DNA of 64,000 bases from Octopus bimaculoides (GCF_001194135.2 NC_068982.1:128774906-128838905), one strand, 5' to 3'. Shown: positions 220 through 60,300, counted from the stretch's first letter. The notes: a model not told the origin generated them from the sequence alone. Translations and numbers: made by a program.

Positions 220-519
220 AGTATGGACTCTTGGGAGTAACTGCCTCACTTTCCAAAGGAGGACTTTTTCCAATTTTGTTAACAGCAGTAACTCTGAAGA
301 AATATTCTGTGTTCTCAGTCAGTCTTGGCACATGAAGCTTGGTAATATTTCCCTCAACTTCATCAACAATAGTCCATCGGCCATATTTGTCTTTCTTTTC
401 AACAATGTAACTGGTAATTGGTGAACCACCAGTGTCTTTTGGAGGCTTCCAATCAAGATCCACAGATGTCTTTTGAATATTAGTGACATTAAGTGGACCA
501 AGTGGACTGGATGGAGCAG
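220..519 (-). CDS. e58: FN3 domain
   Basis: tttacag|...|gtaagt, 300 bp, phase 1-1; [37 protein letters not shown]...[10 protein letters not shown]...PKSPY. Confidence 0.93.
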
Positions 520-3500: not shown

Positions 3501-5841
3501 AAAATGTCTAATAAACAAAAATACAAGAAAATACATATAATATTCAATAACAGGAAATATAACTGCAAACATTCATCTAAACATTACAATAAAACAATTC
3601 TTTACAGTATTTTTCCATTTAAAATCATCAAACCCTTCAAATTTAAACTTGTCAATTTAATATCATATAATGAAAGTTGAGACAGAAAATAGGTGAAGGA
3701 GACAAGGAAATATTAATTACATTAGCAACTGCTAATGATTAAACTACAAAAGCTTAACTGTTCTTATAAATACTTTTAAAACAAAAGGAATGGTAGTGGT
3801 TTTGAAATTATATATACTAATGTTGAAATATTGTTTTAACTAATTAACAGCAAGTTTTTATATGAAGGGTATGAGAGTCAACAGCATGCAGACACTGAAA
3901 ATAAATATATAGGAAGGGATAATTTTATACAGCTAGATTATTATAACAAGGCAACAGTAAATTCAATTGTCATACTTGAATAATCACATCACTCATGCAT
4001 AAATATGTATTTTATAAATCTTAATTACCGAAAGGACTTTTTGCAGTAACTGTCTTGTCCATTTCATTGGGTTCTGATATACCAACTTCATTTTCAGCTG
4101 AAACACGGAAGTAATATTCATTGCCTTCATGCAATTTAGTGTCTGTAAAGCTGGTTTTCCCACCAGCAACACTACCAACTTTAGTCCACATATTTCTTCC
4201 AGCATCTCGTCGTTCAATGATATAGCTAGTAATATCAGCTCCACCATCATCCTTTGGTGGGTTCCAGTGAATAGTTGCTCTGTCATGGTCAACATCTGTT
4301 ACTGTGATAGGAGAAGTTGGTGGACTAGGGATATCTAAATAATTGAAAATAAAATTATTTTAATAGATATACACTAATTGAATTATTTTTCCAAACATTT
4401 CTGTCATAAAAAAAATTATATAAGCAACATTGTATCTTAGTACAGATGATAATAGGAGATGAGTGATTTGAGAGGGCCTGAGCGTAGATGACAAAAGGTT
4501 GATAAGCTCCAGTGGAGCTCATCTGAAAACAGAATGAGGGAAGAAACAACTTATAGAAAGTTAATATGCTTACCAATAACTTCAACATCAAATGTTGCTG
4601 AATCTTCACCTACATCATTGATAGCTTTCAATGTGAACATTCCATCATCTTCCCGAGTAACTTTCTTAATTAAAAGTGTTGTAACATTCTCAAGGGTTTC
4701 TAATGTACATCTACCTTGTGATTTCATAGGTTTGTTTTCTTTAGCCCAAGTTGGTACTGGTTTTGGAATGCCTGTCACTTTAACAGGGATTCGTAAGTTT
4801 GTACCAACATGAAGACGAATCAAGTCTCTGAATTTGTTATCATACTCTAGCTTAGGAGTTTCTAAAAATAGAAAGAATATTATTTTCTCAGGAGTAACTG
4901 AAAACAATATTGCATCAGAAATTGATAAAGAAGCAAATTAAAAATCAATAAAGTTACTAATAAAAGATTTAATGGTATATAGAGCTAATACACGAAATAT
5001 ATATGATTATTATATCACAATCAAGCAAAAATGAAAAATAACTTAATCTCCAAGGAAAAAAAAAAAAGGAAAAATTTTGCTACTATTACAAAAATTGCCA
5101 ATTTTTCATTATCATATTATTATTTATATTTCATTATATTTTTTATAGCTCATTTTCTTCTTCATCATCTTCTTATTATTATTTTTATATTTTACATTCA
5201 GTAACATTCATGTAGTAAGAACATTTATAGATTCATTGTCATCATTTTAAAAAATTTGTTTTCAATATGAAACTCACGTTGAATAGTGAGGTTGCATGAT
5301 GTTGAAGCCTCTCCAAGAGCATTCTTTGCTTGGCATGTATAGGTACCAGCATCTTTGTCTGACATGTCCCTGACTGTGAGATTAGCAAATGAATCTTTGT
5401 AGAAGAAATCAAATTTCTTAGATTCAGATATCTCCCTCTTCTCTTTGATCCTGAAATATTAAAAAATATGTGAATTAATTTTTATCCTAAAAATCATCTA
5501 ATAGTAATCATATCAAAATATTTCTTTATATGAATTTAACAAGCATTCTAATTATATAACATAAAAACTGTTGTTTATTTGTTCATGTGTTGATTTATTC
5601 TAACATTTGTCTTTTGATACAAGCATAGATTGGATAGGGTTCATTTGCAGTAGGATTTCATTGCTGAATGTTCTTCCTGTCATCAACTCTAACCTATTTT
5701 TCATAGTGATTTTTTTTTAATCCCACAGACCTTTGGAAGCACAGAGCAACTAGTTATAAAGGAAAATATCTAATCATTGCTTTTCTCGAGCAGTGACAAG
5801 TGAGACTGTCACTACCAGCAGTTTTATTATACATATTTATT

Positions 5842-5917
<76 letters not shown>

Positions 5918-8900
5918 AACAGACTTTGCCAACCAAATTCACTTACAAGTCATTTGTCAACATGAGGCTATAGTAGAAGACACATGCTCAGATTGCTAAG
6001 CAGAAAGGCAGAACCTTAAAGCAGACTTTCCAAACACACAGCTATACCAGCACCTACTATTATTAGGTATTAATTATAAGATTATATGTAAGACAGGATT
6101 ATACTGTGTTTTTTCCAGCCTTTTTGTGATGATTATTTTATTCAATAAAGTATTTTATAAATACAATTAATAGTGGTAATTTATGCATCTTGAAAACTGT
6201 AGATACAGCATACTTAATATGAAATAAATACATACCAAATGATGTTTGGTGTAGGTTCACCAGTAATTTTACATTCCAGTACAGTTGTTTCTCCAACAAA
6301 TACTGCAGTGTCTTTTAATGGTTCCACAACCAATGGAGGATCTCCAACTAAACAAGGAAAGACATATGCTTGTTAAATTTTCTATTGAACAGACTCATTG
6401 GTAAATAAATATCATCTGTTAACTTTTCAAAAACATTTTTAGCATTAATAATATCTTATTCATTTTTATATGAAGAATGAAATTAGATAAAGATAAAAAA
6501 AACCCAATCCCACTAACTAATAATTAGCACTCAGAAGTGATGAATTTAATTGAAAAAATAAAAAGAAAAGTAATGATTCAGTTTATGTTGCAGTAAAATT
6601 AATCAGAACCTACAGCATGAAGTCATTCATTAAAATAATGATAACCTTAATGTAAAGTAAGTTATCAAGTTTATAGGAATATATAAGTATAAATGTGTTC
6701 TTACTGATAGGATCTCTTGCAACAACACTCTTGGAAGGTTGTGATGGTGGACTTGGGCCGGCCTTATTTTCAGCAATAATACGATATTCATATTCCAACC
6801 CTTCTGTTAGGCCTTTAACAACAAAGCTTGTATCTGGTATATGTACATTTTGTGAAGCACACATCCATTTAGCAGACCCTGCTACCCTCATTTCAACAAT
6901 GTAGTTAGTTATAGGACTTCCGCCATTGCTGTCAGGAGGCAGCCATTTTAATGTCATTGAGTCACGAGTTACATCAATGATCTCAGGTTTGCCAGGAGCT
7001 GATGGTTTACCTGGAAATAAGATTACAGAAGATAATTTAGTATTTGAATATAATACATGCAATATAATGCATGTCATATTAAATTGAATACAAAATATCT
7101 AATGATTCATTTGCAATTAGCAAGCAAATTTTAATGAGCATTTATTATGCATATAGTTATTTAAATAATCATGTATTTATGCACTTATTAGTATCATACT
7201 TAAAGTAAATAAAGATTCATAAATCAGTACTAAATTATTTTCTCTAGAAAACATTATTTGATTGTTTAATAACTTATAGAATTATCTGAATTATTTTAAA
7301 CATCAGTTCATCTTTTTTAATATTGGCTAAAATGATATGGAGTGATCATTACATGTTGATTTCCACAAAGGAAACTTACCAAATGGAAATTTAACAGTAA
7401 TAGGTGGAGTTGGTTTAGATGGTTTTCCAACACCTGCAAGGTTTTCAGCAGATACTCTGAATTCATAAGTATCATTTTCTACCAAATCTGTAACTGTGTA
7501 GTTTAGTTCTGGCACAGCAGTTTTATTAGCTTTAATCCATCTGTTACTTGATGGCTGCTTACGTTCAATTATGTAACCTATAATAGGTGAACCACCATCA
7601 CTCTTTGGAGGTTCCCAGGCCAAGCTGACTGAGCAGTTTGTCACTTCAGTCATGCGGACATTGATAGGAGCATCAGGAACAGCTGTAAAATATTTTGAAA
7701 TGAATGATAATAATATTAATAATAATAATAATATGGAATATTCTCAAACTTAAAATATATCTTACAGGTTAAAAGATAAAAAGGTATACAACTGACAATA
7801 AGTATTTTCAGCTTCATATATATTGCTCAATTATTTTTTTTATATTTATAAATCTCTAATTCTATTCTGTAAATACTAGAATGCTATAAATTGCAGCAGA
7901 ACATGAAGATTTAAAATACCCAACATTTAAGAATTCAGAACTAGCATATAATCAAGTTAATCACTGCACAGACACAAGGTGTAGCACAATGAACAATTTA
8001 AGGAAGTATTTAAGTTGTATGGTTATCTCAATAAGCAGGAAGAAACTAGAAAGAAACACTAATAAATTATTGCTGATTATTAAAAGTATTTAACAACATA
8101 TTGATAAATTTAAAATGATTACTTACAGAATGGCAGTTTGGGTACCGTTGGTTCTTCAGTTTCAGCAAAATCGCTTTGTCCAATTTTATTTTCGGCAGCA
8201 ACTCTAAAGAAGTATTCTACTCCTTCAGTGAGTTTGTTAATTTCGAGTGACAATGTAGTTCCATCTACAGTGCTTACAGGTGTCCATGTAGAACGCTTAG
8301 CATCACGTTTCTCAATGATGTATTTAGTGATTTCACTTCCACCATCAGAACTTGGTGCTTCCCATGAAAATGTAACAGAAGTTTTCTGCACGTCACTAAC
8401 CTTGAGGTTTTGTGGTTTTGATGGTTTACCTAATGTGTGAAAAGAAGTTATAGAATATTATACAAAAAAAGAATTATAAATATAGAAGAACATTTCCCAC
8501 ACAATGTCTTTTATTAGGTAATTGACAGTACTTTCAAACAAACATTAAAAAATTAGAAAATTTTAAACTTTTCCCTTTATTTTTATTTGTATAAAGGCAT
8601 GCAAAAATAGAATTAGGTTGTGTGGTAAAAGATAGAAAATTTGTGTAAAAGATCTACAGCTTTAGAGAGGAAGAAAGCATTGACTTGAATAGTGATTGAA
8701 AATAGTTAAAAAAGTAATGATGTGTAGTTATGAATGGAAAATTTTAGAGAGTTATAAGTGAAATGAAATTTAGCAAGACTGACTTCTCTCTAATAAGTTT
8801 CCACTACCTAATTTAACTAATTCTAGGTCAGACTATAGGCCATCAAGAGTGTTAAACTAAGTGAGCTACTTTATATATTGTAAACTAAATGAACTACTTT

Positions 8901-47300: not shown

Positions 47301-50300
47301 ATTAGATTAATAAAAATTTATCAGTACAAACTTATCATAGGACTAATAAGCTCATAAAAAGCAGCAAGCAAGTGCTATAAGAAAGCACTGTGTATACTGT
47401 TGAGTGGTTGGCATTAGGAAACGCATCCAGCCATAGAAACCAAGCCAAAACAGACATTGGAGCATGATGCAGTCCTCCAACCTGTCAGATCCTGTCAAAC
47501 CATCCATCCAATGTCAGCAACAGACATTAAGTGATGATGATGATGGTGGCAGTGGTGAGTAAATAGGTGTTAAAAGGGTTACATATACTTACTTGAACCA
47601 TTTCACAGTAGGCTTAGGTTCACCAGTAACTTTGCTTTCCAACACTAACTCTTCATTAACCTTCAGCACCTGAATCGTTAAAAGAAATTATTGATATTTA
47701 TAAATTATTTTGAAGAAATTGTTAGAATGCTTTCTTCTAATTAACTACTAGACTAATTGATAGTAGACATAATCACTAATTTGTGACAGAAAAGATCAAT
47801 GGTGCCATTGATGTAATTGTTGTTCTTTTCTGCTTTAAGTTGCTGCTCCTAATGTCTAATATAATTTGTACTGAAACGTTTCAGCAGGTAATTAATAGGT
47901 TCAAGTTGGAAGATATATATTCTAAAAAAAGTGGATAACAACAGATATTTTAAGACATAATTATACTACAATTATTTTAATTGATATATATATTGACAGA
48001 AACTATTAATTGAAATATATGTTAACATTTTAACTTAGTGTTAAAATTGCCAATATAATGGATACTTACGGAAGGTTGAATGACTTCTTCGAATTCTGGT
48101 TTTACTTCTGTTAAGATTGAAAATAGAAGTTTAATTACATATTATTATTCCATTTTTTCATAATTTAACTTAAGCAAATCTAAAAGCTAATTGAATTTAA
48201 CATATAAAATTTAAATAGTAGATTACATTCAAGCTTATAAACCTTCTTTAAACCAGGAAACACTTTATAACTCTGGATATGTAAAATGTAATAAAGAAAC
48301 ATCATTTTTGTGTACATATATAATTGATACTAAGAACACAAATAATGTTCTTAATTATAATTTTATTTGAATTTTTTGAAACATTTATTCTACTCTCTTT
48401 GAGCCAAAAATTTTCTATCTTGTGCAACATATTTAAGATGGAATCTATGTAATATGCAAGATAAATCATGATATGACATATTCAATTAAAACCATATAAT
48501 TATAGTACATGTTACTGTATTGTTTAACTCCAGGTCAGCCCCAATTAATCAGGCCTATGATTAAAGACAATCCAGCATCAAGAAATTTTTTGTTGGGGGT
48601 AGGCAGTAGACTACATTATTCAATGTAATTTTCTTTAAGACAGTAGGATTTAAATTGAGGGATATTTGGCTGCTATTCCCAGCAAGATGAGCAATCACAC
48701 GAAGTTCCCTTATTGGCTTGCAATGTACTACTATTTTTTATAAATAGTATGGAATATGTGAAATATAATAATATTAATATAATACCAATATGATACTACA
48801 GACCTGCATTTCTAGAATATGGCCACATATACTCTCAAGCCTTATTCTGTAGTATATAATTGAAAATAAAACTTCAAATAAAATACAGCAAGATGTAATC
48901 ATTACAGTATATTGTAACTTACCATAGATATTAACAGGTGCTTCACATTCTGCTGAACCAGCGGAATTAGTTGCAACACATTTGTATACACCACTATCAG
49001 GTTTTGCAAATTTTAGTATTTTCAAAATGCAAACATCTTCCTCTGTTGAGATTTTATATTTGGAAGAAGTCTTTATTTCTTTGCCATCCCTATAAATAAA
49101 AATAAAGCCATTATATGAAAATATGTTATATTTCTTGTAGATTATGTTTGTATCATATATTAATTAAATCTGCATTTTTTATCACTAGGAAGCTGAAAAC
49201 TTCAATGGTAAAATAATTTATCATTCTTCCTTATACTCGTAAATTTTGTTTCATGCATTACAACTGATAAAGGTATATTAAATAAATAAACATGTGATTT
49301 TATACATATCTTATATAAATGATGTACCTTTTGTTTTACAACCGTTGTTCAAAACTAATAACCATTTCTAACAATTTTGATTTAAAGATTTGTTTTTTCA
49401 TAGACTAGTCAGGGAAAGAACGTTAACGACTATGACTTTTACAAGCCTTCCATGGCTGGTCACATTTATGTGGTTGATTTATCTCTTCAGTAAAATTATT
49501 GCTGGGATAATAATTTTAGAGAGCTGAGATTCTGGGCATGATGCAGAGGACAAAGTGTTTTGTATAAGTCCTAGAAAGTGATATACATTAAGGCTGATAA
49601 GAAGAATAATGAGAAGGTGGAGAGGCTATGCAGATAGCTTGTTTAGAAGAATGTATAGGATGTTTGTGTGCAGTAGCCTCACAGTCTCATGCATATGAGC
49701 AATACTCTGCTGTAGGTCTTAGTTGAGCCTTGAAGAGTATGAGTGATTAATCAGGGCTGAAACATTTTCTGACCCTAAAAAAGAAACTGATTCTTTATGA
49801 CACAATTCTGGCAAAGCTTATATGTGGGTTTACTATGAATGATGATCAGGGACTGTGAAGCTTAGCACTTGAAACAACTTTGTAAATTTTGTAAAAGATT
49901 GTTCATAATTAATAAGAGTGAAAAATAAACTTGTTTCCTGTTATGCATGACAGAGATGAATATAGTTACACCTTTCTATAGCCCTTATACATTTGGGACT
50001 CTTATATTGAATTATCTTACTCCTGTTTTTGTACTTATTAAAGCATGTAAAAACTATAAACGTTGTTGACTTACTTGAACCATTTCACTGTAGGTTTGGG
50101 TTCACCAGTTACTTTACATCTCATTTCTACCTCTTCATCAGCTTTCTTTGTCTAAATTTCAAGCAAATATAAATTCCATGTATTATAAAATTCATAATAT
50201 TAGTAGAATACAACAAATGTTAAAAAAATTACTGAAATAATGTATTCCTTAAAGAAATTTAAATATAAATGCAAATAAGAATTATTTCAGTGAAACTCTT

Positions 50301-53300
50301 GTTAAGTTTTTAATGGTGATATAAATCATTTTTAGCATGCACTAAATATATAAATATATGTCATTAATGATAATTATCAAAGGAATTTCACTTACCACTG
50401 GCTGCAATACTTCTTCAAATTCTGGCTTGCGTTCTGCAAATAATATTATTTAAATAAATAGATTGAATGGATTGTCATTGCTGAAACACTTCTTTAAGAT
50501 TAGTATCTCAATATTTCATCACCATATATGCTCTGAAAATGCATCTATACTACCTACCAATCAATAGCTTTGAAATTGAGGCATATAAGATTTCAAAGTG
50601 GGCTCATGTTTAATTGCCATGCAATTAATCTAAGTAATAATAATCTTTAAAATTTCTTCAAATAAAATTATGTTTAATTGGTTTTAAATTTGGGTTTTAA
50701 ATTTTGGTACAAGGCCATATATTTAATTAAATATCAACAAATATATTAATTACAAAATTCATTATAAAATTAATCAAATATTAACAAATATATTAATTAT
50801 AAAATGAACTAACCATAGAGAACAACAGATGCCTCACACTCAGCAGTGCCAGCTGAGTTTGTAGCAACACATTTGTATATTCCAGCCTCTGCTTTGGTAA
50901 ACTTAGGTACTTTCATGTGGCATACTTTATCATCCATGGTAATTTTATTCTTGGAAGTATTCTTAATTTCTTTGTTATCTCTGGAAAAAATTATTAAAAA
51001 TTAGAAGTTAGTAATTATTAATTTTTATTGAATAATCGAAATATATATTTCTTACTTGTAAGAAGCATTCCTGTAAATAAAGCAACTGCATTTGCTCCTA
51101 ATCTTGCTTGCAGATTTACTCTGCACACATACAACTAAACTCTTGAATAAATTTCCTGAATACTTGTTCTCCTATGTCTCGATTGAGTGTTGTCTTATTT
51201 TTGAGAACTTTGGTGAAAACAATGTGCTTTACCTTGACATTAGTAAGACATTTTACTATATCTTCCATGAAAATCTCCAAGTCAAGTTACTAGCCTACAT
51301 GCTCCATCAAACTATCATCTCTTGAATCAAATGTTTTCTGTTAGACTCCATTACAGCAGTCAACTCTATAATTATGGTATACTTCAAGACTCTGTTATGT
51401 CTTCAAATCTCTTCTTTTTATACATTAATAAACAATTCCCTGCTACGTGTAGAAACATACACACATTTACATACAAGATGGTACTGAGCCCCTCACTCTT
51501 CCTTAAGCTTTAGTACATTGGTACTATCAACATCAACCCTAGAACCTTACATTAAACTGCCACTTCATTCATAAGCAGCAACTTTGAAATCAACTTGCAA
51601 TGGAAATATGATGACAGTCTGTATCAACAGCAAGTAAGCATAAATACTACATGTATGAAGGAAAGAAACATGCAGAACACTCTCCTTGTACGTAAATACT
51701 ACACAGCTAAACAAATGTTCAGCTGACCCATGAGAGAGCATCTACATGCCCACTCTGTCTGCTAGAAATTGTAGCTAATTTTTCTATTACTCTTGCACTA
51801 ACATCATTTAAAAAGACAACATTGCTGGGCTGATGCTGCAATGACTTACTCACCTACATGCTGCTTCTTTTATCTAGGCTTTTACTGCTGCTACAAAAAT
51901 TTCTGCTCCTATAATGTTTCAAGATGTAGCACATTCACACAAGTCCTCACTCAAAGAATTTTCCCATCTGTTCCTAAATATATCCTATGTCTCATTACAA
52001 TTATATTTTTGTTACTTTAGAGAACAATGGAATGTTTGCACATAACTTCAATCCCCAGTTAAGGCTTTCAAATAAATAACTATAGAATTATCTAAATTAT
52101 TTATGTTTCAGATACTCTGAATCACATTGTGCTTTATACACATGTGTCTTATTTACTATTACACCTTGGAATGTTATGAATCTAAATGCTGCATAGACCA
52201 ACTAAATAATAATTCAAAAAAATAAATGCATACATATCTATCATTTATACATACGTTCATACATATATTGATAAAAAGTGTATATACTTACTTAAACCAT
52301 TTAACAGTTGGTTTGGGTTCACCAATTACTGTGCACTTAAGCTCCAATGGTTCATCAGCCTTCAGAGTCTGAAAAATTTAGATATGAATGTATTACTTTA
52401 TATTTACACATATTTAAATAGGTTAACATTGACAAAGAATGGTGCCCTTTTAATAAAGTTCTGTGTGAACAAAATTATTTGCACCAAGGTAGAAATGGTC
52501 TCTTATTATTCTTACTATCAGTTACAAATCATTTATTAATATGTACCCAAAGTGTAATAGTAACAAGATATTAAACTGACAGAAAAAAATCTGTAACCTA
52601 CCACAGGTTGAAGAATTTCTTCAAATTCTGGCTTTTGCTCTAGAAAAATTAAAAAATTAAATACATTAATTACACACATTTACATAATCTGGCATGCTTT
52701 AAATCCACAGGATAATATTCAATCCAGAATAATCTAAAACTTAGAAACACTGTATTCTGTAGTTCTGTTATCCTTTTACATTACTAACAAATATCTCCCC
52801 ATTATATACATGGCAAAATTTCAAGAGATATCAGAAAAAACATATACCTAAAAAAACCATAAAGATTTATTTTAATGTAACTATTACATAAATCACATAT
52901 ACACACATGCCCATGTGAATTAACTGCTAAAACATTATGTAAATTTCAAAATTTCCCTAAAGATATCTAACTATATTTTTATACAGAAACATTCCTCCCC
53001 CAACCTTTTTTTTTTTTAAGAGGAAGAATCATATATCTTACATATGTTCATATGGTAAGAGGAGATCTATATTTTACATGTTATATATATAAAATTCTTT
53101 CCACTTTTTAAAAAATTGTATGACATATATATCTTAATAATAGAGTGGATAGATGGATTTTCGAAATTTTAATTTTTGGAGACAAACTTCTCAAGTGTTT
53201 TCAAAGGTCCATCCATCTAAAAGACTCATGTAAAAGAATTTAGCAAGACATATAGAAATTCTTTTGGTGTTTTTCCTTTATTTTATGTTTTCTCAGCCCT

Positions 53301-56300
53301 GAGGCTAATAATTCTTTAATCTTACCATTTAAAAAGAACATTGTAATTCAAGAAAACATCTTTGTTTACAATATATACTAACCAAATAGATTGATTGTAG
53401 CTTCACATTCTGCTGAGCCAGCTGAATTAGTAGCAACACATTTGTATATACCAGCTTCTGGTTTTGTAAATGTAGGTATTTTCAAGGTGCAAACATTTTC
53501 TTGGCGAGTAATTGGAGATTTGGAAGTGTTTTTAATCTCCTTATCATTTCTGTAATATAAGAAAAAAAAATCACAAGATATATTAAAATGAAATAAATAA
53601 AATTTTACAAAATTAATTATATGAAACCCCACATTCATTTATCTTGCTCACATTTAAAGAATCTTTACATCTGGAATACCAATGCATTATTGATATTTAT
53701 TTAAATTTACATTATTACATGGTAATGAATTTTAGCTTATATATGAGAAATATTCTTTTGACAATGTTAACTCCAGTTGTTACTGGTAAAGAGTAGTTAT
53801 TAACTATTATGGTAAAACTTTAGCTATGCAGCCCATAGTATACTAGCAAACTTGGTTCTTCTTTCTGTTTTTTTTTATGCTATTTGATATTCGACTGACT
53901 GAAACAGATATAATTTCAAGAACATATAGGGAGAACTGTTCAATTCTACTAGTTCTATTTATATAAAAAGGTAATAAATCAAGCAGAAAAGCCTTAAGTT
54001 TGTAACAAAGGAAATATCAGATGTTGTAATCACTGTATGGTTTATATAACAGTACAATTTCTTTTAAGAAGGAACAGTGTAATGGCATTTGCAGGCCCTA
54101 TGAAACTGGTGAGATTGATATGGTTAACTTTCTTTATCTTTCATCTTTAGCTTGTTTCAGTCATTAGACTGCAGCCATGCTGGAGCACTGCCCTGAAGAA
54201 TGTTTAGTCAAAGATATGAAACCCAGTACTTATTTTTATTTTCTGAGTGTGGTACTTATTTTATTAGTCTCCTTTTGCTAAACTGCTAAGTTATGGTGAC
54301 ATAAACACACCAGCATCAGCTGTTATGTGGTGCAGGGACAAACACAGACACAAAGATACACACACACATATACACAGTGGGCTTCTTTAAGTTTCCATCT
54401 ACTAAATTGACTCACAAGGCTTTGGTTGGCCCAAGACTATAGCAGAAGACACTTGCCCAAGTTGCCATGCAGTGAGATTGAACCTAGAACTACGTGGCTG
54501 GAAGAAAGCTTCTTACCACACAGCCATGCCTGCACCTACTGAAAGAAAAACATGTTCAGGGATTTCAATCTAGATAAGAATGTCTGACTTACTTAAACCA
54601 TTTAATTGTTGGTTTAGGTTCACCAGTGACTTCACATGTCAGTTCTACAACTTCATTTGTCTTCACAGTCTAAAATGTAAAATATTAAGACAATTTAAAT
54701 ATAATTCAAATAAATAATAAATTTTATCATATTAAGAATAATTTGAATAAATATAGACAAAATATTCTACTTACAGCTGGTTCAAGGACTTTAACAAATT
54801 CTGGAGCTTGTTCTAAGAATTCAATTAAAAGAGTATCATATTAGGTTTTTAAATATACATATGCATCAATCTGAATTAAACTTTATAAATAAATATGAAT
54901 TTTATGTAATTTTTTAGAATATTACTTTCTTGACTGGAATATTATTTTACCTGAATATCATTAATATGAATGATACACTTATGAATATACTTATAATACA
55001 CTTTACTGTCATGTATAGAGCAATTATGCCAAAGCAAAAATGTATACAAGATAGTCGTAATTCAAAATGCAATTTTTAAAATGAACATGTTTTGTTTCTA
55101 TTTTAGAAAATAGAATTAACCATTAGACTTTTTTTTAAAAACCCACTTTTTTACCGAAAAAAAAGACCCAAGATTTTACATACCAAATAAGGTAACTGAA
55201 GCTTCACAACTTGTTGTTCCTGCAGGATTAGTTGCAACACATTTATAAAGGCCTGCTTCTGCTTTAGTAAATTTAGCCATTTTCAAAGTGCATACATCTC
55301 CCTCTTGTGACATCTTATATTTAATAGTTGGCTTAATTTCAACATTGTCTCTGTAATGAAATATAAAGAGATATTTCTTTTAATATTTATCTCAATCTTA
55401 TGGTGAGCTCTAAATGCAAAAAAAATTACAAAATATGAAATTAAATTTCATCCAGTTTTCTGAGAATACAAGTAGACATTTTACTTCAACATAAGATAAA
55501 ATTTAAAGAATCTAAAATAACAAAAGCACAAAAATCACAATTTTCCTCTATTATGTTCTAATATTGTCATGTATTGCAAAATCATTTTCTTGCAAACACA
55601 AATATTTTATATATAGTTCAGCCTCTTAAAATCCATTTAATCCTTTCTTTTTAATAAGTGATCCAAATTTAAAGAAAGTAAGAAGATTATTACTAACTGA
55701 AAAATATAAGCAGATTACATAACTGAACAGAATTGCTTTTGTTGTGTTTCTGAGCAGAGCAATTTATTCAGTTCATCTGGAAATGCTATCAGTGATAGGT
55801 TAGCATCCTATCCAAGGAGTAATGTCCTAACTTAAATTGGATGGTCATCTTCATTGGGATCAAATCATGATGCTTAACCAAACCAACATATCACAAATAT
55901 TGTCCTGAAACTATATAAGGGTGCTGGAACAATAGCTTGTTCCTTGCATTTGACTGGCCACTTTCATGGCAGAGATTTGTTTTAAATAGCTGACTGAGCT
56001 ATTCAATATCAACATTCCTTAAAAAGTTAAATATAAGATATGTGCACCATAGATATTAACCAGAATTTTTTTAAATGTTGTATATTATTTGCAATCAATT
56101 TCTCAATAGAGATAATAGTAAAGTGTTTCTAGCATTAAACTTTTTTTAAATATCTTAATGTAATGGAATTTTAAATAAATATATCCTAATAATTACCATT
56201 ATGCACATAAATATTTTAAGAAACAAAAAACTTACTTGAACCATTTGATGGTCGGTTTGGGTTCACCAGTAACTTTGCACACCAAATTCAAACTTTCTTC

Positions 56301-59300
56301 ATTTTTGATGCTCTGAAATGAAAATTAAAAATCAATGAATAAGCGTCTAACTATAAAAAGCAAAACTCAGATTTTACCAACATGTAAAAAAAATAATAAA
56401 AGGAAAAAAAAATTCATGATTCGGAATGAAATACTTACAGTTGGTTGAAGAACTTCTACAAATTCAGGTTTCTTCTGTTCTGGTTTGGCTTCCTTTGGTT
56501 TGTCTTCCCCAAGTGTGATAGTAGCTTCGCATTCAACTGAACCAGTGGAATTTGTAGCAACACACTTATAAACACCGACATCATTCTTAGTGAATTTAGT
56601 TGTTTTTAATACACATATAGTACCATCTTGAGTGATTTTGGTAAGTGTTGTTGGCTTAATTTCTTTGTTGTCTTTAAACCACTTAATGGTAGGCTTTGGT
56701 TCGCCTGTTACCTTACATTTCAGTTCCAATGGTTCATTCAATTTGATAGTGGCTGATGTGAAGATTTCTTCAAATTCAGGTTTGCGTGTCTTAGGCTTTT
56801 CTTCCTCAAGTGTAATAGTAGCTTCGCATTCAACTGAACCAGTGGAATTTGTAGCAATACACTTGTAAACACCCACATCATTCTTAGTGAATTTACTGGT
56901 TTTTAGAGTACATATAGTGCCATCTTGAGCAATCTTGGTAAGTGATGTTGGCTTAATTTCTTTGTTGTCTTTAAACCACTTAATGGTAGGCTTTGGTTCG
57001 CCTGTTACCTTACATTTCAGTTCCAATGGTTCATTCAATTTGATATTGGCTGATGTGAAGATTTCTTCAAATTCAGGTTTGCGTTCCTTAGGCTTTTCTT
57101 CATCAAGTGTTATTGTTGCTTCACATTCAACAGAACCAGTGGAGTTTGTAGCAATACACTTGTAAACACCCACATCATTCTTAGTGAATTTGTTAGTTTT
57201 CAGAGTGTATACTGAGCCATCTTGAATAATTTTGGTGAGAGAGGTTTGTTTGATTTCCTTGTTGTCTTTAAACCACTTAATGGTAGGCTTTGGTTCACCT
57301 GTTACCTTACATTTCAGTTCCAATGGTTCGTTCAATTTGATATTGGCTGATGTAAAGATTTCTTCAAATTCAGGTTTGCGTTCCTTAGGCTTTTCTTCAT
57401 CAAGTGTAATAGTAGCTTCGCATTCAACAGAACCAGCAGTGTTTGTGACAACACACTTGTAAACACCAACATCATTCTTTGTGAATTTATTGGTTTTTAA
57501 AGTACACACTTCACCATCTTGAATAATTTTGGTAAGTGTGGTTGGCCTGATTTCTTTTCCATTCCTAAAAAAATATATAATTTTCTTGTATAACTACATA
57601 AACTATAATTTTCTTACATAACTACATAAGATATAGGAATATAAAGACTATATATCTATAATAAATATTAATTTATTTCAAATGGTAAGCAAATGAGTTT
57701 TGTTTTCCCATTATTAAATTTTTAAGAGAATATATGTCAATTCTAATATAATTATTAGTCATTTTCTCAGGGCTATTCATCACTGAGGAGGCTAAATCAG
57801 GCCAAAACACCAATGTCTGATGATCCCCTGATGTCATTTTTAAGACTCAAATTCCCTTAAGAGAAGTTTCTCTGAAACAAAATATTACAGCTAGAACTGT
57901 TCTATACTTGTATAAACACAGTAACTGTCACACACACCATTATTTTAATCTAATGCTGTTTCAAGTGTGTATATTTAATTTAAACTTGTCCAGCTTCAGC
58001 ACAAATCAATAACTGTTTTGTTTCTGATTTCTATATTGGAACTGGCATCTGATGATTTGCTGATAAGGAGTCTCTCTAAGATAGCTAGTGCCATTCTCTT
58101 TTTCTATGCACATTTTGTTATACATATAGTTATTTTAATTTAATACTGTTTCAAGTATGTATGCTGAGAGAAGTTATAGCCTTAAAACAATTATCAGGTT
58201 TTATGAAACTTTGAATGATGAAACTGGACTAGATTACAAACAGAAGACTTTTATAACCAAATGTATTCATAGGGTCGGAATGAAAATACATTTTAAGAAA
58301 AAACATGAATGACAACAGACACTAACCATGAAAATAAATTATAAGTTGATTATATTTGAAGAAAAAACCTTCCTATTTCATTCATTATCATAATTCTCTT
58401 TAAATAAGTGTTGGTTGTGTTTATTCTTTATATCTTAATATTTCTATTCTTTCAAGTCAGAATTGAGATTGAAACTTTAATTTAAATTCTTGTAAAAAGC
58501 TACATTAATAAGATGATACTCACTTAAACCACTTGACAGTTGGCTTTGGTTCACCACTGAATTTGCACTTCAATTCCATACTGTCACTAACTTTGAAAGA
58601 CTAAAAAAAAAAATAGACATAATATATAAATACAAATATAACATAATGATAATACAATAAATATAATCAATAAAGAAATTATTAAATTGTGAAGAAGTTT
58701 TAAAATGTTTATAATGTTACTTACGGCTGAGTTAAATACCTCTTCAAGGACTGGTTTCTTCTTTAGGTCCTTTTTCTCTGTAAATTTACAAAGTGTATAA
58801 GTGTGAGAAAGCAATTGCAAAGCTATGAAAGAAATTAACATCAAATTGTTCATCATAAAATACAGAAAATTTATAATAATGGAAGTTTTTGCTGCTTCCC
58901 AATTCAGAGTCAAACAAAAGCATTCATACTTGTTTGGAAATAGATGAAACATACCTGTGACTTTGACTTTACATGAAGTTGAAGACGAACCAACATTGTT
59001 AGTTGCTTTACATGTATATTCAGCAGTGTCTTGTTTTGTAACTTTATGGATGGTCATTGTATGAGTGGTTTCAGAACTTTCAATTGTGAAATGTTCAGAT
59101 GGTTTAATTTGAACACCATTTTTGTACCTAGAAAGAAAGATGTTTAAACAGTTAATTTTTGTACGGGGTTATGAGTATCCACATTACTAAAAATATTATT
59201 AACATGAATGATTAAAGAATAAAAATGAAAACAAGAAAATATTTCACATTTATTTTACAATTTGAAATGCTTTATACAAAATCACCAACATAACAATTAA

Positions 59301-60300
59301 GATAATATTGGTTGGTTTAAGAAGTAAACCTATAAGTTTTTCCCAGAGCCAACTATTTACAATATAGACAAGAAACTTAGACAAAGCTAACTAAAAAATA
59401 TTATTTATAGCAACATAGACCTTGAAAACTTCCTCCAGCTTATTATCATCCAATATCAAAATATAGCCACTATACATACAAAAGAAACACACAGTATTTC
59501 ACTTACAATAGTATCTAACAATATACAGCTAAATAACCATCAAATTCTGATTAACTTTCATGGGGTAAATGCTTGTATAATATAGTAAACAAGATCCCAA
59601 AAATTAGGCATTATATTTTGGTCCAGAAACAACTTTCCCTCTGAGCAATTGCTGATTCACTACAAAGTAAAAATGAACCCCACATTGAACAATGCCATCA
59701 TGTCTTAGACACAACAGCTGTGACAGAACTATTTGAGATGAAACAGGTGGGAAAGTTTTCAGTTCAACAATTTTACATAGTTACTACCTCACTGATGTTT
59801 TGTGTCATCTCCTTATGTACCTTCTACAGTAACTATAATGGTCTCCCTTCTTCTGAAACAACAAACTGTAGAAAAATAGTGCACATACCTATTCCCATTC
59901 CCTCTGACTTACTGCCCTACATTAGATATAATATCTAATCTTCAGGAATTGCATTTGTTTGAATCTCCCTCCCTGTCCATATTTTTTCTACAGACATCAA
60001 TTGATGGTATATAAACTGATTACCAATAGTATTGTAAAACTGATTACAGAAGTATATACAAGAATACAGAATAAATAATCATATTAAAAAGACTGATAAC
60101 TTGATACTATATATACTAACATGATTTTATTCTAAGCTTATAAGGAAAACAACTTACCATGTTATTTCAGGACTTGGAGCTCCTTCAGTCATGACAGTAA
60201 ACTGAACATCAGTTCCTTCATCTGGTTGTTTATCATCCAATTTTTTGGTGAATGAAGGAGCAATTGTAAATTCAGCAGTAACATCTTGTAGATCTTGTTC
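220..60300 (-). CDS. Giant Ig/FN3 muscle protein, titin/connectin-like (titin-twitchin family); 58 exons, 32 Ig + 10 FN3 domains, partial at both ends
   Basis: Hand-traced GT-AG exons with compatible phases; core exons total 12,643 nt (phase 0 in, phase 1 out). Translations show Ig motifs (W..G, D.G.Y.C) and FN3 motifs (W.PP..DGG..I..Y, Y.FRV.A.N..G). Family assignment is from domain content; exact ortholog not established. Confidence 0.93.
900..1050 (-). mobile_element. Decayed SINE fragment related to the 35423-35735 element
   Basis: Reverse complement resembles the 35423 element body (cttgtcacact...tacat.aaggg.aca...tgtt/gctcagcca...catgttaa). Confidence 0.5.
1266..1565 (-). CDS. e57: FN3 domain
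   Basis: ttcag|...|gtaag, 300 bp, phase 1-1; [36 protein letters not shown]...[10 protein letters not shown]. Confidence 0.93.
1886..2191 (-). CDS. e56: FN3 domain
   Basis: ctcctag|...|gtgag, 306 bp; [31 protein letters not shown]...[10 protein letters not shown]. Confidence 0.93.
4029..4334 (-). CDS. e55: FN3 domain
   Basis: atttag|...|gtaatt, 306 bp; [37 protein letters not shown]...[10 protein letters not shown] (correct frame absent from the ORF track). Confidence 0.92.
4574..4861 (-). CDS. e54: Ig domain
   Basis: 288 bp, phase 1-1; [38 protein letters not shown]...[14 protein letters not shown]. Confidence 0.93.
5278..5450 (-). CDS. e53: Ig domain, C-terminal half
   Basis: tttcag|...|gtgagt, 173 bp, phase 2-1; (W)[46 protein letters not shown]. 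Confidence 0.92.
5843..5915. repeat. (CA)n(TA)n microsatellite
   Basis: Direct reading. Confidence 0.95.
5918..6050 (-). mobile_element. SINE family B, partial head
   Basis: Shares accaaattcact.acaag...ctatagtagaagacac with the 23293, 41168 and 54151 copies. Confidence 0.6.
6236..6347 (-). CDS. e52: Ig domain, N-terminal half
   Basis: 112 bp, phase 1-2; [37 protein letters not shown], split in the Trp codon TG|G. Confidence 0.92.
6705..7010 (-). CDS. e51: FN3 domain
   Basis: 306 bp; [30 protein letters not shown]...[12 protein letters not shown]. Confidence 0.93.
7380..7682 (-). CDS. e50: FN3 domain
   Basis: 303 bp; [30 protein letters not shown]...[12 protein letters not shown]. Confidence 0.93.
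8127..8429 (-). CDS. e49: FN3 domain
   Basis: 303 bp; [30 protein letters not shown]...[10 protein letters not shown]. Confidence 0.93.
9184..9408 (+). mobile_element. SINE family A (3' portion)
   Basis: ggcatgtaaaaagcac...ggagtggttggtgttaggaagggcatccagctgtagaaac...ccaactcatgccagcatggaaagc, repeated elsewhere in the window. Confidence 0.85.
9860..10147 (-). CDS. e48: Ig domain
   Basis: 288 bp; [38 protein letters not shown]...[14 protein letters not shown]. Confidence 0.93.
10297..10430 (-). mobile_element. SINE family C, decayed fragment
   Basis: Similar to the 13055 copy (gtactt..attt.atc.a..cgaaa.g..gaaa.g.aaa). Confidence 0.55.
10555..10680 (-). mobile_element. SINE family B, decayed head
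   Basis: ccaattccactcataagg...gactatagcaggagacacttgctcaagg, matching the other family B copies. Confidence 0.6.
10948..11120 (-). CDS. e47: Ig domain, C-terminal half
   Basis: 173 bp, phase 2-1; (W)[46 protein letters not shown]. Confidence 0.92.
11236..11350 (-). CDS. e46: Ig domain, N-terminal half
   Basis: 115 bp, phase 1-2; [38 protein letters not shown]. Confidence 0.92.
11457..11533. other. Assembly gap (77 N) inside a TA/CA microsatellite
   Basis: Run of N. Confidence 0.99.
11590..11705 (+). mobile_element. SINE family A, 3' fragment
   Basis: tccaacccatgccagtatggaaagtggatgtaaaac followed by an (atg/ata)n tail. Confidence 0.65.
12138..12443 (-). CDS. e45: FN3 domain
   Basis: 306 bp; [30 protein letters not shown]...[12 protein letters not shown]. 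Confidence 0.93.
13055..13247 (-). mobile_element. tRNA-derived SINE family C, well-preserved copy
   Basis: Minus strand begins ggcgagctggtagaaacgttaac (A-box-like) and ends gggccttgtgcctagagtagaaaag; decayed paralogs at 10297, 62085 and 62305. Confidence 0.8.
13684..13986 (-). CDS. e44: FN3 domain
   Basis: 303 bp; [30 protein letters not shown]...[12 protein letters not shown]. Confidence 0.93.
14135..14610. repeat. (ATT)n/(ACT)n low-complexity cluster
   Basis: Direct reading. Confidence 0.9.
15369..15475. mobile_element. Small fold-back (MITE-like) element
   Basis: 28-bp inverted arms 15369-15396 and 15448-15475, 22/28 complementary. Confidence 0.5.
16245..16541 (-). CDS. e43: FN3 domain (first FN3 of the protein in this window)
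   Basis: 297 bp; [30 protein letters not shown]...[12 protein letters not shown]. Confidence 0.93.
17295..17579 (-). CDS. e42: Ig domain preceding the first FN3
   Basis: 285 bp; [38 protein letters not shown]...[14 protein letters not shown]. Confidence 0.93.
17692..17961 (-). CDS. e41: Ig domain (distal tandem)
   Basis: 270 bp; [36 protein letters not shown]...[10 protein letters not shown]. Confidence 0.92.
18830..19096 (-). CDS. e40: Ig domain (distal tandem)
   Basis: 267 bp; [35 protein letters not shown]...DDEANYEF. Confidence 0.93.
20292..21248. other. Assembly gap (957 N)
   Basis: Run of N after a (TA)n tract. Confidence 0.99.
22011..23081 (-). CDS. e39: putative large unique (non-Ig) exon, 357 aa, D/Q/K/N-rich with YGQ hexapeptide repeats; alternatively a terminal exon reading to the stop at 21949
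   Basis: 387-aa stop-free frame in AT-rich DNA; strong phase-1 acceptor ttattttttcag| at 23081 in the same frame; weak phase-1 donor A|GTATTA at 22011 gives 1,071 bp (multiple of 3). Confidence 0.68.
22057..22188 (-). repeat. 18-bp coding tandem repeat, 7 full units plus partial, encoding (S/R)A(E/G)YGQ
   Basis: Plus-strand units ttggccatattctgcact and ttggccatatcctgctct. Confidence 0.95.
23293..23710 (-). mobile_element. tRNA-derived SINE family B
   Basis: Minus-strand head ggcatggctgtgtgatagg (A-box-like), internal CA/TA tract; paralogs at 41168 and 54151. Confidence 0.8.
24464..24730 (-). CDS. e38: Ig domain (distal tandem)
   Basis: 267 bp; [35 protein letters not shown]...[10 protein letters not shown]. 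Confidence 0.93.
25398..25664 (-). CDS. e37: Ig domain (distal tandem)
   Basis: 267 bp; [35 protein letters not shown]...MDEADYSC. Confidence 0.93.
26271..26537 (-). CDS. e36: Ig domain (distal tandem)
   Basis: 267 bp; [35 protein letters not shown]...DDKAEYTC. Confidence 0.93.
26775..27044 (-). CDS. e35: Ig domain (distal tandem)
   Basis: 270 bp; [35 protein letters not shown]...DDQEEYTC. Confidence 0.93.
27976..28254 (-). CDS. e34: Ig domain (distal tandem)
   Basis: 279 bp; [36 protein letters not shown]...SDDGLYSC. Confidence 0.92.
31097..31325 (-). mobile_element. SINE family A (3' portion), inverted relative to the other copies
   Basis: Reverse complement of ccaactcatgccagcat...acggacgttaaatgac and aggaagggtgtccaacc. 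Confidence 0.82.
31355..31590. repeat. Degenerate ~42-bp minisatellite, ~5-6 units
   Basis: Unit ctccatgaggcccaa.rct.raaaggaactcagccactttgc, some units truncated. Confidence 0.85.
33668..33937 (-). CDS. e33: Ig domain (distal tandem)
   Basis: 270 bp; [35 protein letters not shown]...SDAGTVLAC. Confidence 0.92.
34956..35222 (-). CDS. e32: Ig domain (distal tandem)
   Basis: 267 bp; [35 protein letters not shown]...TDECEVTA (correct frame absent from the ORF track). Confidence 0.91.
35343..35408. repeat. (TG)n microsatellite
   Basis: Direct reading. Confidence 0.95.
35423..35735 (+). mobile_element. tRNA-derived SINE family D
   Basis: Pol III A box TGGCCCAGTGG (35436-35446) and B box GGTTTCAATTCC (35479-35490), followed by ~240 bp of non-tRNA body. 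Confidence 0.8.
36148..36406 (-). CDS. e31: Ig domain (first after the charged insert)
   Basis: 259 bp, phase 0-1; [33 protein letters not shown]...KDEGAVSC. Confidence 0.9.
36834..37028 (-). CDS. e30: K/E/D-rich charged insert
   Basis: tttttag|...|gtgag, 195 bp, phase 0-0; [40 protein letters not shown]...KTVKKT. Confidence 0.88.
37406..37571 (-). CDS. e29: E-rich charged insert
   Basis: tatgtag|...|gtaag, 166 bp, phase 2-0; [55 protein letters not shown] (absent from the ORF track). Confidence 0.87.
37756..38088. mobile_element. Element with 42-bp inverted repeats (MITE-like or fold-back)
   Basis: Arms 37756-37797 and 38047-38088, 35/42 complementary, all seven differences are transitions. 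Confidence 0.6.
38231..38340. repeat. (GATA)n tetranucleotide microsatellite
   Basis: Direct reading. Confidence 0.97.
38482..38767 (-). CDS. e28: Ig domain with WSKGKW motif plus start of the insert
   Basis: ttaag|...|gtaaa, 286 bp, phase 1-2; [39 protein letters not shown]...TNEHG...DWKAGLKH. Confidence 0.91.
39060..39218 (+). mobile_element. SINE family A, 3' fragment
   Basis: gttggcattaggaaggcatccagccatagaaacc...caacccttcccagcatgaaa. Confidence 0.75.
39233..39459 (-). CDS. e27: Ig C-terminal half plus start of the next Ig
   Basis: 227 bp, phase 2-1; (W)[15 protein letters not shown]...[33 protein letters not shown]. Confidence 0.91.
39622..39733 (-). CDS. e26: Ig N-terminal half
   Basis: 112 bp, phase 1-2; [37 protein letters not shown]. 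Confidence 0.91.
40186..40358 (-). CDS. e25: Ig C-terminal half
   Basis: 173 bp, phase 2-1, AAG acceptor; (W)[15 protein letters not shown]...[15 protein letters not shown]. Confidence 0.9.
41168..41498 (-). mobile_element. tRNA-derived SINE family B
   Basis: tgtttcagtcattagac...ctatagtagaagaccc...ccacacagccac. Confidence 0.8.
41711..41825 (-). CDS. e24: Ig N-terminal half
   Basis: 115 bp; [38 protein letters not shown]. Confidence 0.91.
42020..42420 (-). mobile_element. Composite decayed SINE with a family B head
   Basis: ctaccaaatccattcacaaggctttggttgacc at ~42275-42310 matches family B; the rest is diverged. Confidence 0.55.
42535..42834 (-). CDS. e23: Ig domain
   Basis: 300 bp; [38 protein letters not shown]...[15 protein letters not shown]. 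Confidence 0.93.
42996..43162 (-). CDS. e22: Ig C-terminal half (167-bp class)
   Basis: phase 2-1; [26 protein letters not shown]...[10 protein letters not shown]. Confidence 0.92.
43501..43577 (-). CDS. e21: Ig middle exon (77-bp class)
   Basis: phase 0-2; [25 protein letters not shown]. Confidence 0.9.
44358..44620 (+). mobile_element. SINE family A (3' portion) with (GAT)n tail
   Basis: gtggcatgtaaaaagcacc...ccaacccatgccagcatggaaaattgacgttaaac then gatgctgatg. Confidence 0.87.
45020..45099 (-). CDS. e20: linker plus Ig A-strand
   Basis: 80 bp, phase 1-0; [26 protein letters not shown]. Confidence 0.87.
46459..47279 (-). CDS. e19: 821-bp exon with one half and two full Ig domains
   Basis: phase 2-1; [10 protein letters not shown]...[27 protein letters not shown]...; repeat spacing 312 bp. 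Confidence 0.93.
47375..47545 (+). mobile_element. SINE family A, 3' fragment
   Basis: gagtggttggcattaggaaacgcatccagccatagaaacc...gacattaagtgatgatgatg. Confidence 0.78.
47593..47669 (-). CDS. e18: Ig middle exon (77-bp class)
   Basis: [25 protein letters not shown]. Confidence 0.9.
48070..48107 (-). CDS. e17: 38-bp micro-exon (Ig A-strand)
   Basis: ttaacag|...|gtaag, phase 1-0; [12 protein letters not shown]. Confidence 0.88.
48923..49089 (-). CDS. e16: Ig C-terminal half (167-bp class)
   Basis: [26 protein letters not shown]...[10 protein letters not shown]. Confidence 0.92.
49440..49800 (-). mobile_element. Decayed LINE ORF2 fragment (CR1/L2/Jockey group, region downstream of RT)
   Basis: Minus frame [27 protein letters not shown] resembles the LYK..IRP.LEYCS..W motif; in-frame stops. 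Confidence 0.7.
50075..50151 (-). CDS. e15: Ig middle exon (77-bp class)
   Basis: [25 protein letters not shown]. Confidence 0.9.
50396..50433 (-). CDS. e14: 38-bp micro-exon
   Basis: [12 protein letters not shown], phase 1-0. Confidence 0.88.
50814..50980 (-). CDS. e13: Ig C-terminal half (167-bp class)
   Basis: [26 protein letters not shown]...[10 protein letters not shown]. Confidence 0.92.
51090..52080 (+). mobile_element. Decayed LINE ORF2 with a reverse transcriptase remnant (CR1/L2/Jockey group)
   Basis: [25 protein letters not shown]...IS*IKCFL (cf. LDISKAFD.V.H..LL.KL..Y) and [19 protein letters not shown] (cf. GVPQGSVL.P.LF..YIND); frameshifts and stops. Confidence 0.8.
52292..52368 (-). 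CDS. e12: Ig middle exon (77-bp class)
   Basis: [25 protein letters not shown]. Confidence 0.9.
52602..52639 (-). CDS. e11: 38-bp micro-exon
   Basis: [12 protein letters not shown], phase 1-0. Confidence 0.88.
53383..53549 (-). CDS. e10: Ig C-terminal half (167-bp class)
   Basis: [25 protein letters not shown]...[10 protein letters not shown]. Confidence 0.92.
54151..54539 (-). mobile_element. tRNA-derived SINE family B
   Basis: Minus-strand head aggtgcaggcatggctgtgtggtaag...ggttcaatctc (A- and B-box-like). Confidence 0.85.
54593..54669 (-). CDS. e9: Ig middle exon (77-bp class)
   Basis: [25 protein letters not shown]. Confidence 0.9.
54775..54812 (-). CDS. e8: 38-bp micro-exon
   Basis: [12 protein letters not shown], phase 1-0. 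Confidence 0.88.
55184..55350 (-). CDS. e7: Ig C-terminal half (167-bp class)
   Basis: [26 protein letters not shown]...[10 protein letters not shown]. Confidence 0.92.
56236..56312 (-). CDS. e6: Ig middle exon (77-bp class)
   Basis: [25 protein letters not shown]. Confidence 0.9.
56439..57564 (-). CDS. e5: 1,126-bp exon with one half and three full near-identical Ig domains
   Basis: phase 2-0; 297-bp (99-aa) tandem units [50 protein letters not shown]... Confidence 0.94.
58524..58600 (-). CDS. e4: Ig middle exon (77-bp class)
   Basis: [25 protein letters not shown]. Confidence 0.9.
58725..58777 (-). CDS. e3: linker plus Ig A-strand
   Basis: 53 bp, phase 1-0; [17 protein letters not shown]. 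Confidence 0.88.
58955..59127 (-). CDS. e2: Ig C-terminal half
   Basis: 173 bp, phase 2-1; (W)[46 protein letters not shown]. Confidence 0.92.
59450..60010 (+). mobile_element. Decayed LINE ORF2 C-terminal fragment
   Basis: [30 protein letters not shown] and [12 protein letters not shown] resemble the post-RT region of CR1/L2-type ORF2. Confidence 0.65.
60158..60300 (-). CDS. e1 (first traced in the window): linker plus Ig N-terminal half
   Basis: tgtatag|...|gtaag, 143 bp, phase 0-2; [48 protein letters not shown]; upstream exon not found within the window. Confidence 0.9.

Follow-up and report, generated by a model that had tools for sequence, protein, structure and literature searches.

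The window analysed in the present study, a 64,000-nucleotide stretch of the Octopus bimaculoides genome (GCF_001194135.2 NC_068982.1:128774906-128838905), holds a fragment of a giant muscle-protein gene running on the minus strand from 60300 to 220, gene order being that of high to low coordinates. Exons were found as stop-free segments and then by tblastn with the window's own repeat units, which recovered the short exons too, and were joined by scoring GT/AG junctions between neighbouring coding anchors under the requirement of a continuous frame. The resulting model has 57 exons, GT-AG introns throughout and a frame of 4,224 codons with no stops. It encodes 32 immunoglobulin (Ig) and 10 fibronectin type III (FN3) domains in the order Ig17 - insert - Ig10 - Ig - FFF - II - FFF - II - FFFF (F, FN3; I, Ig), with at least 28 Ig domains ahead of the first FN3. 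The G+C content of the window is 29.7%, two runs of N are present (11457-11533 and 20292-21248), and nearly all protein-like long stop-free segments lie on the minus strand. Pfam assigned 17 I-set domains to residues 1-1,696, ten to the next 891 residues, and five I-set plus ten fn3 domains to the last 1,488, while hidden Markov models (HMMs) built from the window's own domains gave I17 - (147) - I11 - FFF - II - FFF - II - FFFF. When both strands were scanned, these Ig and FN3 models matched 54 exons, every one of them on the minus strand, and the signal is therefore far beyond chance; no additional Ig or FN3 exon appeared in a permissive scan of either window strand. Positions 60300-64000 contain no recognisable exon, the window beginning within the gene, and the gene exits in phase 1 at the 220 end.

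A sequence-only reading of the same DNA had described 16 tandem Ig domains, an Ig with the motif WSKGKW, a charged insert, ten short Ig domains, a longer Ig and FN3/Ig repeats. Gene model, Pfam and HMMs bear out this description and its coordinates, the 16 tandem Ig and the WSKGKW Ig together being the 17 I-set domains that Pfam places ahead of the insert, whereas the translation length it gave, 4,214 amino acids, is replaced by the 4,224 codons of the splice model. The coding features, in gene order and with the evidence for each, are the following:

42996..60300, minus strand: exons 1-22, 13 tandem type-A I-set Ig domains (tblastn, splice scoring, Pfam I-set)
38482..42834, minus strand: exons 23-28, four divergent Ig domains, Ig14-17 (splice scoring, Pfam)
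36804..38520, minus strand: charged insert of 146 residues, in the tail of exon 28, exon 29 (37571-37406) and exon 30 (37028-36804) (composition, no Pfam or PDB match)
17692..36406, minus strand: exons 31-40, ten type-B Ig domains, one exon each of 259-279 nt (tblastn, Pfam, splice scoring)
17295..17579, minus strand: exon 41, the "longer" Ig, of the thick-filament-region type (splice scoring, domain scores)
12138..16541, minus strand: exons 42-44, first FN3 triplet, with the muscle-type motif W.PP.DDGGS.I..Y (tblastn, Pfam)
9860..11350, minus strand: exons 45-47, first Ig pair, a classical I-set domain split after KW followed by a thick-filament-type Ig (splice scoring, domain scores)
6705..8429, minus strand: exons 48-50, second FN3 triplet (tblastn, Pfam)
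4574..6347, minus strand: exons 51-53, second Ig pair (splice scoring, domain scores)
220..4334, minus strand: exons 54-57, four consecutive FN3 domains, the opening of a long FN3 run known from orthologs (tblastn, Pfam)

The type-A Ig domains carry the motifs KDNKEI...YKCVATN and are joined by short K/E/P-rich linkers of 10-35 residues. Most are split by a phase-2 intron after KWF, and several units are fused in two large exons (57564-56439 and 47279-46459). Tandem repeats are evident in the DNA itself (297 bp in 3.6 copies with 89% matches at 56478-57557, and 312 bp in two copies with 83% at 46476-47086), and a single 1,126-nt exon encodes four Ig-plus-linker units with 91-100% protein identity. 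These near-identical units indicate recent tandem duplication, and the copy number in the assembly may consequently be unreliable. A phase-2 intron after a conserved KW is common to the type-A Ig domains and the first Ig of each later pair, and from exon 32 onward the whole-domain exons are nearly all symmetric (phase 1-1). Among the type-B exons, nine of the ten are symmetric in this way, exon 31 being entered in phase 0. The PDB matches of the type-B domains include cardiac MyBP-C, titin I9-I11, I65-I70 and I81-I83, and obscurin Ig; judged by these matches, they are sarcomeric Ig domains and not titin-specific.

The motif WSKGKW lies in the last divergent Ig (Ig17, 38767-38482) and is kept in gastropod orthologs. 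As the best PDB matches of this domain (titin I65-I70, Robo and DCC) are not specific to N2A, its use as an N2A marker was rejected. The adjoining charged insert is composed of 20% K, 20% E and 12% D, with 57% of residues charged; P, E, V and K together make up 46%, with proline scarce. A 149-residue query spanning the insert matched no Pfam family and no PDB chain, and with both searches empty no N2A or PEVK homology was found for the insert. A counterpart of 139 amino acids is present at the equivalent position in an Elysia "titin" (P0121), and a matching insert follows the same Ig in a further fragment (P0123), where it reaches the fragment end. These two proteins and the window have in common both the WSKGKW Ig and an insert that starts with TDWKxxLKHRE. 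Set against an I-band spring, the window offers 27 tandem Ig domains ahead of the thick-filament-type Ig together with this insert; no segment of PEVK scale is found within the window.

Database searches returned only fragments of at most about 2,550 residues. For the FN3/Ig part (1,464 residues), the closest colinear matches were the mollusc-like P0009 (50% identity) and Bulinus truncatus Btru_006488 (P0010, 49%), followed by fish titin, UNC-22-like and Saccoglossus 'titin-like' proteins at 28-33%. For the Ig-insert-Ig part, the 'titin' of Elysia marginata (P0121) matched at 46% over 98% of the query, and all others at 33% or less. Both P0009 and P0010 read I-run, FFF-II-FFF-II-F, at which point the fragments end, an order identical to that of the window. 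Taken position by position, the best matches were in these relatives and in P0001, P0003 and P0040, the ten FN3 and five late Ig domains scoring 100-145 bits to lophotrochozoan position-equivalents versus 70-100 bits to titin or twitchin. The domain orders compared are as follows:

Twitchin/UNC-22-type fragments: FFIFFIFFI...
Fish titin A-band fragments: IFFFIFFFIFFIFFF...
This window: I-run, FFF-II-FFF-II, FFFF... (exits the window)
Bulinus genomic locus (L002): split-Ig exons as in the window; at least 19 FN3, continuing into a 4,143-residue FN3 gene model
P0040 and P0067 (JGI): I6, FFF-II-FFF-II, F8
Rotaria P0021 and P0016: FF-II-FFF-II, F14
Lottia locus (L007): at least 31 consecutive FN3 exons, a lower bound set by about 8 kb of N after FN3 number 31
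Rotifer-like contig (L003): 32 Ig, FFF-II-FFF-II, 14 FN3, stop; unrelated genes follow on the opposite strand
JGI soil contig Ga0150984_110821280 (L001/L005): 8 Ig, about 16 FFF-II units, 13 or more FN3
Lingula locus (L006): I, FFF-II-FFF-II, about 16 FN3, I-FFF-II-F, kinase, Ig Ig ...

An intron divides the leading Ig of a pair at HMM position 36 in the window, as it does in Bulinus, Lingula and a wasp locus considered below. The FFF-II unit occurs twice in Bulinus, in Lingula, in the rotifer-like contig and in the window itself, and about 16 times in the JGI soil contig. Among the relatives a kinase was seen only in Lingula; no kinase motif follows the FN3 run of the rotifer-like contig. The domain order in the window matches that of a conserved gene of molluscs, brachiopods and rotifers, and not that of the vertebrate I-band/A-band junction. 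We know of no described titin-family protein with a five-domain FFF-II super-repeat, and no description of the FFF-II plus long-FN3 architecture was found in the literature searched.

Several of these loci have features of their own. The Lingula anatina sequence (LFEI02000584.1, 1-28974) carries three adjacent NCBI models of 5,657, 1,498 and 3,271 residues on one evenly spaced same-strand exon array, and FN3 exons at 19046-20670, in a short interval separating two of the models, lie outside all three; the models are probably one giant gene split by annotation. The Lottia relatives carry the names LOTGIDRAFT_176120/141638. The 31-kb soil contig (JGI sample 3300012469) is an intron-free array of more than 10,000 residues, divided by stop codons into adjacent open reading frames (ORFs). 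In Bulinus, the FN3 run at 25624-34095 of the locus has a period of three domains (identity 0.59 at offset 3, 0.49 at 6 and 0.46 at 9). A conserved super-repeat within the FN3 run was considered and rejected, the period being weak in Lottia and absent from Lingula and the rotifer-like contig; because it is clear only in Bulinus, it suggests recent three-domain duplications there rather than a conserved ruler.

The identities given above also bear on whether the gene belongs to a muscle giant of the titin class at all. Were it of the obscurin/UNC-89 type, or an extracellular Ig/FN3 protein from outside muscle (hemicentin, Robo or sidekick, for instance), the obscurin Ig among the PDB matches of the type-B domains and the hemicentin and Robo entries among the weaker Ig matches would be expected. 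Those matches, however, reach 24-28% over parts of the query, against 46-50% in colinear alignment to the titin-class orthologs, and the FN3 domains of the window have the intracellular muscle motif and match the FN3 of titin and twitchin. With Pfam, the window showed no SH3, DH or PH domain and neither a signal peptide nor a transmembrane segment. Obscurin, with its SH3-DH-PH module and two kinases, has very few FN3 domains, a poor fit to the ten in the window and to the 14-31 in a row in orthologs, and we regard an origin of this kind as extremely improbable.

A relationship to vertebrate titin was the central claim of the sequence-only reading, which saw in the window the layout of the vertebrate I-band up to the I/A junction, proposed that the gene may be a true titin ortholog rather than twitchin, which would mean that the I-band plan predates the protostome-deuterostome split. 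It also took the source for a probable cephalopod; the best matches, from gastropods at 46-50% identity, show molluscan affinity only, and exact-sequence searches with two long ORFs of the window gave no match. The A-band of titin is built from 7-domain (Ig-Fn-Fn-Ig-Fn-Fn-Fn, D-zone) and 11-domain (Ig-Fn-Fn-Ig-Fn-Fn-Fn-Ig-Fn-Fn-Fn, C-zone) super-repeats (PMC5648799), and the I/A junction has a domain composition of its own. The Ig-FFF-II-FFF-II-FFFF of the window corresponds to neither super-repeat, and the orthologs go on with 14 to 31 or more plain FN3 domains rather than Ig-Fn super-repeats. Six FN3 domains in a row occur in three vertebrate 'Titin' fragments too, namely P0216 (I-FFFFFF-I-FF-II-FF-I-FF), P0243 and P0258, which presumably represent the I/A junction. 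Colinearity with them was assessed in a domain-by-domain matrix and rejected, as the matrix held class-level matches (the first FN3 after an Ig, for example, pairing with the first FN3 after an Ig) and no diagonal. Window domains scored about equally against titin and twitchin, with an identity of about 29% to both.

What the window does have in common with vertebrate titin is the use of intracellular I-set Ig and FN3 domains with the same motifs, whole-domain exons with mostly phase-1 intron boundaries, and the general progression from an Ig spring to an FN3-containing part, including type-B Ig domains that resemble I-band Ig. A true vertebrate-style titin, with I-band plan (proximal Ig, N2A-like insert, PEVK, distal Ig), I/A junction, A-band super-repeats and titin kinase, would fit the broad sequence of Ig run, unique insert, Ig run and Ig/FN3, the titin I-band Ig among the type-B matches, the six-FN3 runs of the vertebrate fragments, and the kinase found downstream on the same exon array in the Lingula ortholog. 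Such a gene is nevertheless unlikely here, given that the FN3/Ig order departs from the D-zone and C-zone super-repeats and from the six-FN3 fragments alike, no N2A or PEVK similarity was found for the insert, individual domains are no nearer to titin than to twitchin, and the Lingula kinase is closer to twitchin kinase. On domain order and colinearity, the proposed vertebrate-like layout does not hold. Of the proposed titin ortholog, the assignment to the titin class and the separation from twitchin survive; the vertebrate domain order and a closer affinity of single domains to titin do not. The evolutionary inference is not derivable from this fragment, nor is it new, because protostome titins with an I-band plan (D-titin/Sls, Ce-titin and I-connectin) have been published before. 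An account of D-titin from 2000 presented it as colinear with vertebrate titin over the N-terminal half of the latter, and the titin of Platynereis, a spiralian, has already been used as a striation marker.

The window gene and twitchin share thick-filament-type Ig and FN3 classes, the NCBI label of the Lingula piece (P0178) is 'twitchin-like', and the Lingula kinase follows an Ig-Ig-Fn unit and has twitchin kinases as its nearest matches. The kinase-bearing fragments of the first search, which end at about 2,530 residues and include 77-159 kinase residues, were unusable for comparison; the downstream kinase compared was that of Lingula, assembled from its exons. Against solved structures, it scored 329 bits to the Aplysia twitchin kinase and 307 to that of C. 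elegans, followed by MYLK4 (292), DAPK (about 260) and titin kinase (247). The kinase comparison on which the titin assignment was to be tested thus came out in favour of twitchin. The vertebrate titin kinase is a derived kinase. Because of this, and because no TTN-1 kinase was among the matches listed, the similarity is not decisive for orthology.

Could the window gene then be a molluscan twitchin, orthologous to projectin and UNC-22, with an unusually long N-terminal Ig region? Twitchin combines Fn-Fn-Ig repeats with a short N-terminal Ig run, whereas the window gene combines FFF-II units with a long plain run of FN3 and an Ig run of great length, and the Fn-Fn-Ig super-repeat core is absent from window and orthologs alike. 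Separate fragments of the Fn-Fn-Ig, twitchin-like type exist in molluscs (Lottia P0239 and Elysia chlorotica P0242). Close to the kinase, Lingula reads I-FFF-II-F-kinase, as opposed to FFF-II-FF-II-F-kinase in twitchin-type fragments. Published Mytilus twitchin has 15 FN3 domains in total, and Lottia alone has at least 31 in succession. Because of the different pattern, the far longer Ig run before FN3, the separate molluscan fragments and the kinase-proximal pattern of Lingula, the window gene is, on the evidence of its domain architecture, not twitchin, and a molluscan twitchin with a lengthened Ig region is highly unlikely. The sequence-only reading had suggested the same on this point, which is upheld by the domain order, by the 28 or more Ig domains before the first FN3, and by orthologs with 19 to 31 or more consecutive FN3.

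The long Ig region, with 13 linker-separated and four divergent Ig domains, a conserved charged insert and ten tandem Ig domains, is of the kind found in invertebrate titins. Drosophila Sls (D-titin/kettin) and crayfish I-connectin likewise have long Ig runs, including short-linker Ig, with charged or elastic inserts between Ig blocks, and apparently a block of type-B-like tandem Ig leading directly into a short Ig/FN3 module where the molecule meets the thick filament. Sallimus has five C-terminal FN3 domains, and its C-terminus reaches the myosin filament (PMC9886281). The sls-like wasp protein P0158 (locus L004) is the immediate neighbour of a gene model of 11,482 residues, which precedes it. 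Its order is ..I I F (Ig split at position 36) I F F F F, at which point it ends, with five FN3 domains as in Sallimus. Position-equivalent domains of the window or its orthologs were the best or near-best matches of its domains, by only a few bits over twitchin and titin. As judged from these domain comparisons, one-to-one orthology of the window gene with Sls is likely. The differences are considerable, Sls having megadalton PEVK regions where the window has only its 146-residue K/E/D-rich insert and short linkers, and stopping after five FN3 where the molluscan and brachiopod relatives have FFF-II-FFF-II and 16 to 31 or more FN3, in Lingula also a kinase.

The nematode TTN-1 offers a parallel of another kind. 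In C. elegans, many Ig domains, some FN3 domains and a kinase are combined in one TTN-1 gene beside a separate twitchin gene (PMC12198301), and this one-gene plan resembles that of the Lingula exon array. A synteny mark for this class would be the presence of SESTD1-like and CCDC141/zormin-like genes upstream (PMC12198301), beyond the window. TTN-1 was set against the window by description only. It has 11 FN3 domains and long PEVT and other repeat regions, and these regions are absent from the window. On balance, we consider that the window probably covers a middle stretch of a gene for a giant sarcomeric filament. This gene, from a mollusc or close relative and distinct from twitchin, would belong to the invertebrate titin class along with Sls/D-titin, I-connectin and TTN-1.

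Several points weigh against this assignment. Both ends of the gene are outside the window, which includes neither a Z-disc part nor a kinase, and we infer its muscle expression and splicing. The proteins used for comparison are fragments of giant genes, none being a full-length reference. The correspondence with the wasp Sls C-terminus is carried by scores barely above those of twitchin and titin domains. Finally, by sequence similarity the Lingula kinase is nearest to the Aplysia and C. elegans twitchin kinases among solved structures, with no TTN-1 kinase among the matches listed.

The remaining features of the window are two assembly gaps and an ORF that the sequence-only reading did not mention:

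11457..11533, no strand: assembly gap 1, within the intron 12137->11351 between the donor of the third FN3 exon and the acceptor of the next Ig half-exon
20292..21248, no strand: assembly gap 2, within the 5.4-kb intron 24463->19097 between the Ig exons 24730-24464 and 19096-18830
21952..23172, minus strand: orphan stop-free ORF of 407 codons, in the same intron as gap 2

The exons flanking gap 1 are both in phase 1, and their junction aligns without indels to both gastropod orthologs (TKIEKPI up to the junction versus VKVVKSIVGVAPILLEPL). On the strength of these phase-matched flanks and the indel-free alignment, no coding sequence is lost at gap 1, which is purely intronic. The microsatellites (CA)10, (AT)10 and (AC)12 border it (11410-11456 and 11562-11585) and probably explain the break in the assembly; further intronic microsatellites are (ATAG)20 at 38230-38309 and (AT)29 at 5858-5915. 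At gap 2, too, the flanking Ig exons are both in phase 1 and can be spliced without a break in the frame. When the three sequences were aligned here, P0009 had exactly one additional Ig at the junction and Bulinus had none, so that one Ig exon of about 270 nt could be hidden in the gap. Since P0009 has this extra Ig, the count of ten short Ig domains is a lower bound.

The orphan ORF has a strong phase-1 acceptor at 23082 and weak phase-1 donors at 22646, 22397 and 22052, and encodes a polar, acidic sequence ending in (GQSAEY)n repeats. By a rough estimate from base composition, the chance expectation of a 407-codon ORF in such AT-rich DNA is about 1e-10. It matched no Pfam family, and a search of 1.84 billion representative proteins gave 14 weak matches, all to the GQSAEY repeat, and no real homolog. 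With no homolog and no space for it at the equivalent Bulinus position, a conserved exon was rejected; the ORF could represent a cassette exon restricted to this lineage or a terminal exon used alternatively, and is retained as a candidate. A dispersed repeat of about 220 bp, resembling a short interspersed nuclear element and with 80-85% identity between copies, is present at 9183-9403, 44364-44580, 31117-31266 (inverted) and 63846-63892, that is, in introns and upstream of exon 1.

By analogy with titin, Sls and twitchin, an extensible I-band spring would be formed by the charged insert together with the Ig runs; its length could be tuned by skipping of the symmetric single-domain exons from exon 32 onward, and the FN3-containing part would anchor the molecule on the thick filament. 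As the exon array of the Lingula ortholog extends to Ig-FFF-II-F-kinase-Ig, the full gene may join the spring, the thick-filament part and a kinase. On its own the window adds little to this picture: it is an internal fragment, its relatives are already annotated as 'titin', 'twitchin-like' or 'hypothetical protein', a spiralian gene of the titin class is accepted, and the vertebrate-like layout fails at the level of domain order. The broader interest lies in a protostome gene that joins an Ig spring to an FN3-rich part and, in the brachiopod relative, adds a kinase within a single exon array, and which bears on current scenarios of titin evolution. Hanashima et al. [quoted passage not shown] We raise, tentatively, the possibility that lophotrochozoan titin-class genes contain a previously undescribed thick-filament module, with at least two FFF-II units ahead of an extended plain stretch of FN3, and that they are undivided titins, in which one gene covers spring, thick-filament part and kinase. 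If this were true, it would favour one ancestral gene that was split or reduced in arthropods, and the window would be the transition from the spring to the FN3 part. The combination of FFF-II units with a long FN3 run may, in addition, be connected with the long thick filaments, rich in paramyosin, that these animals possess.

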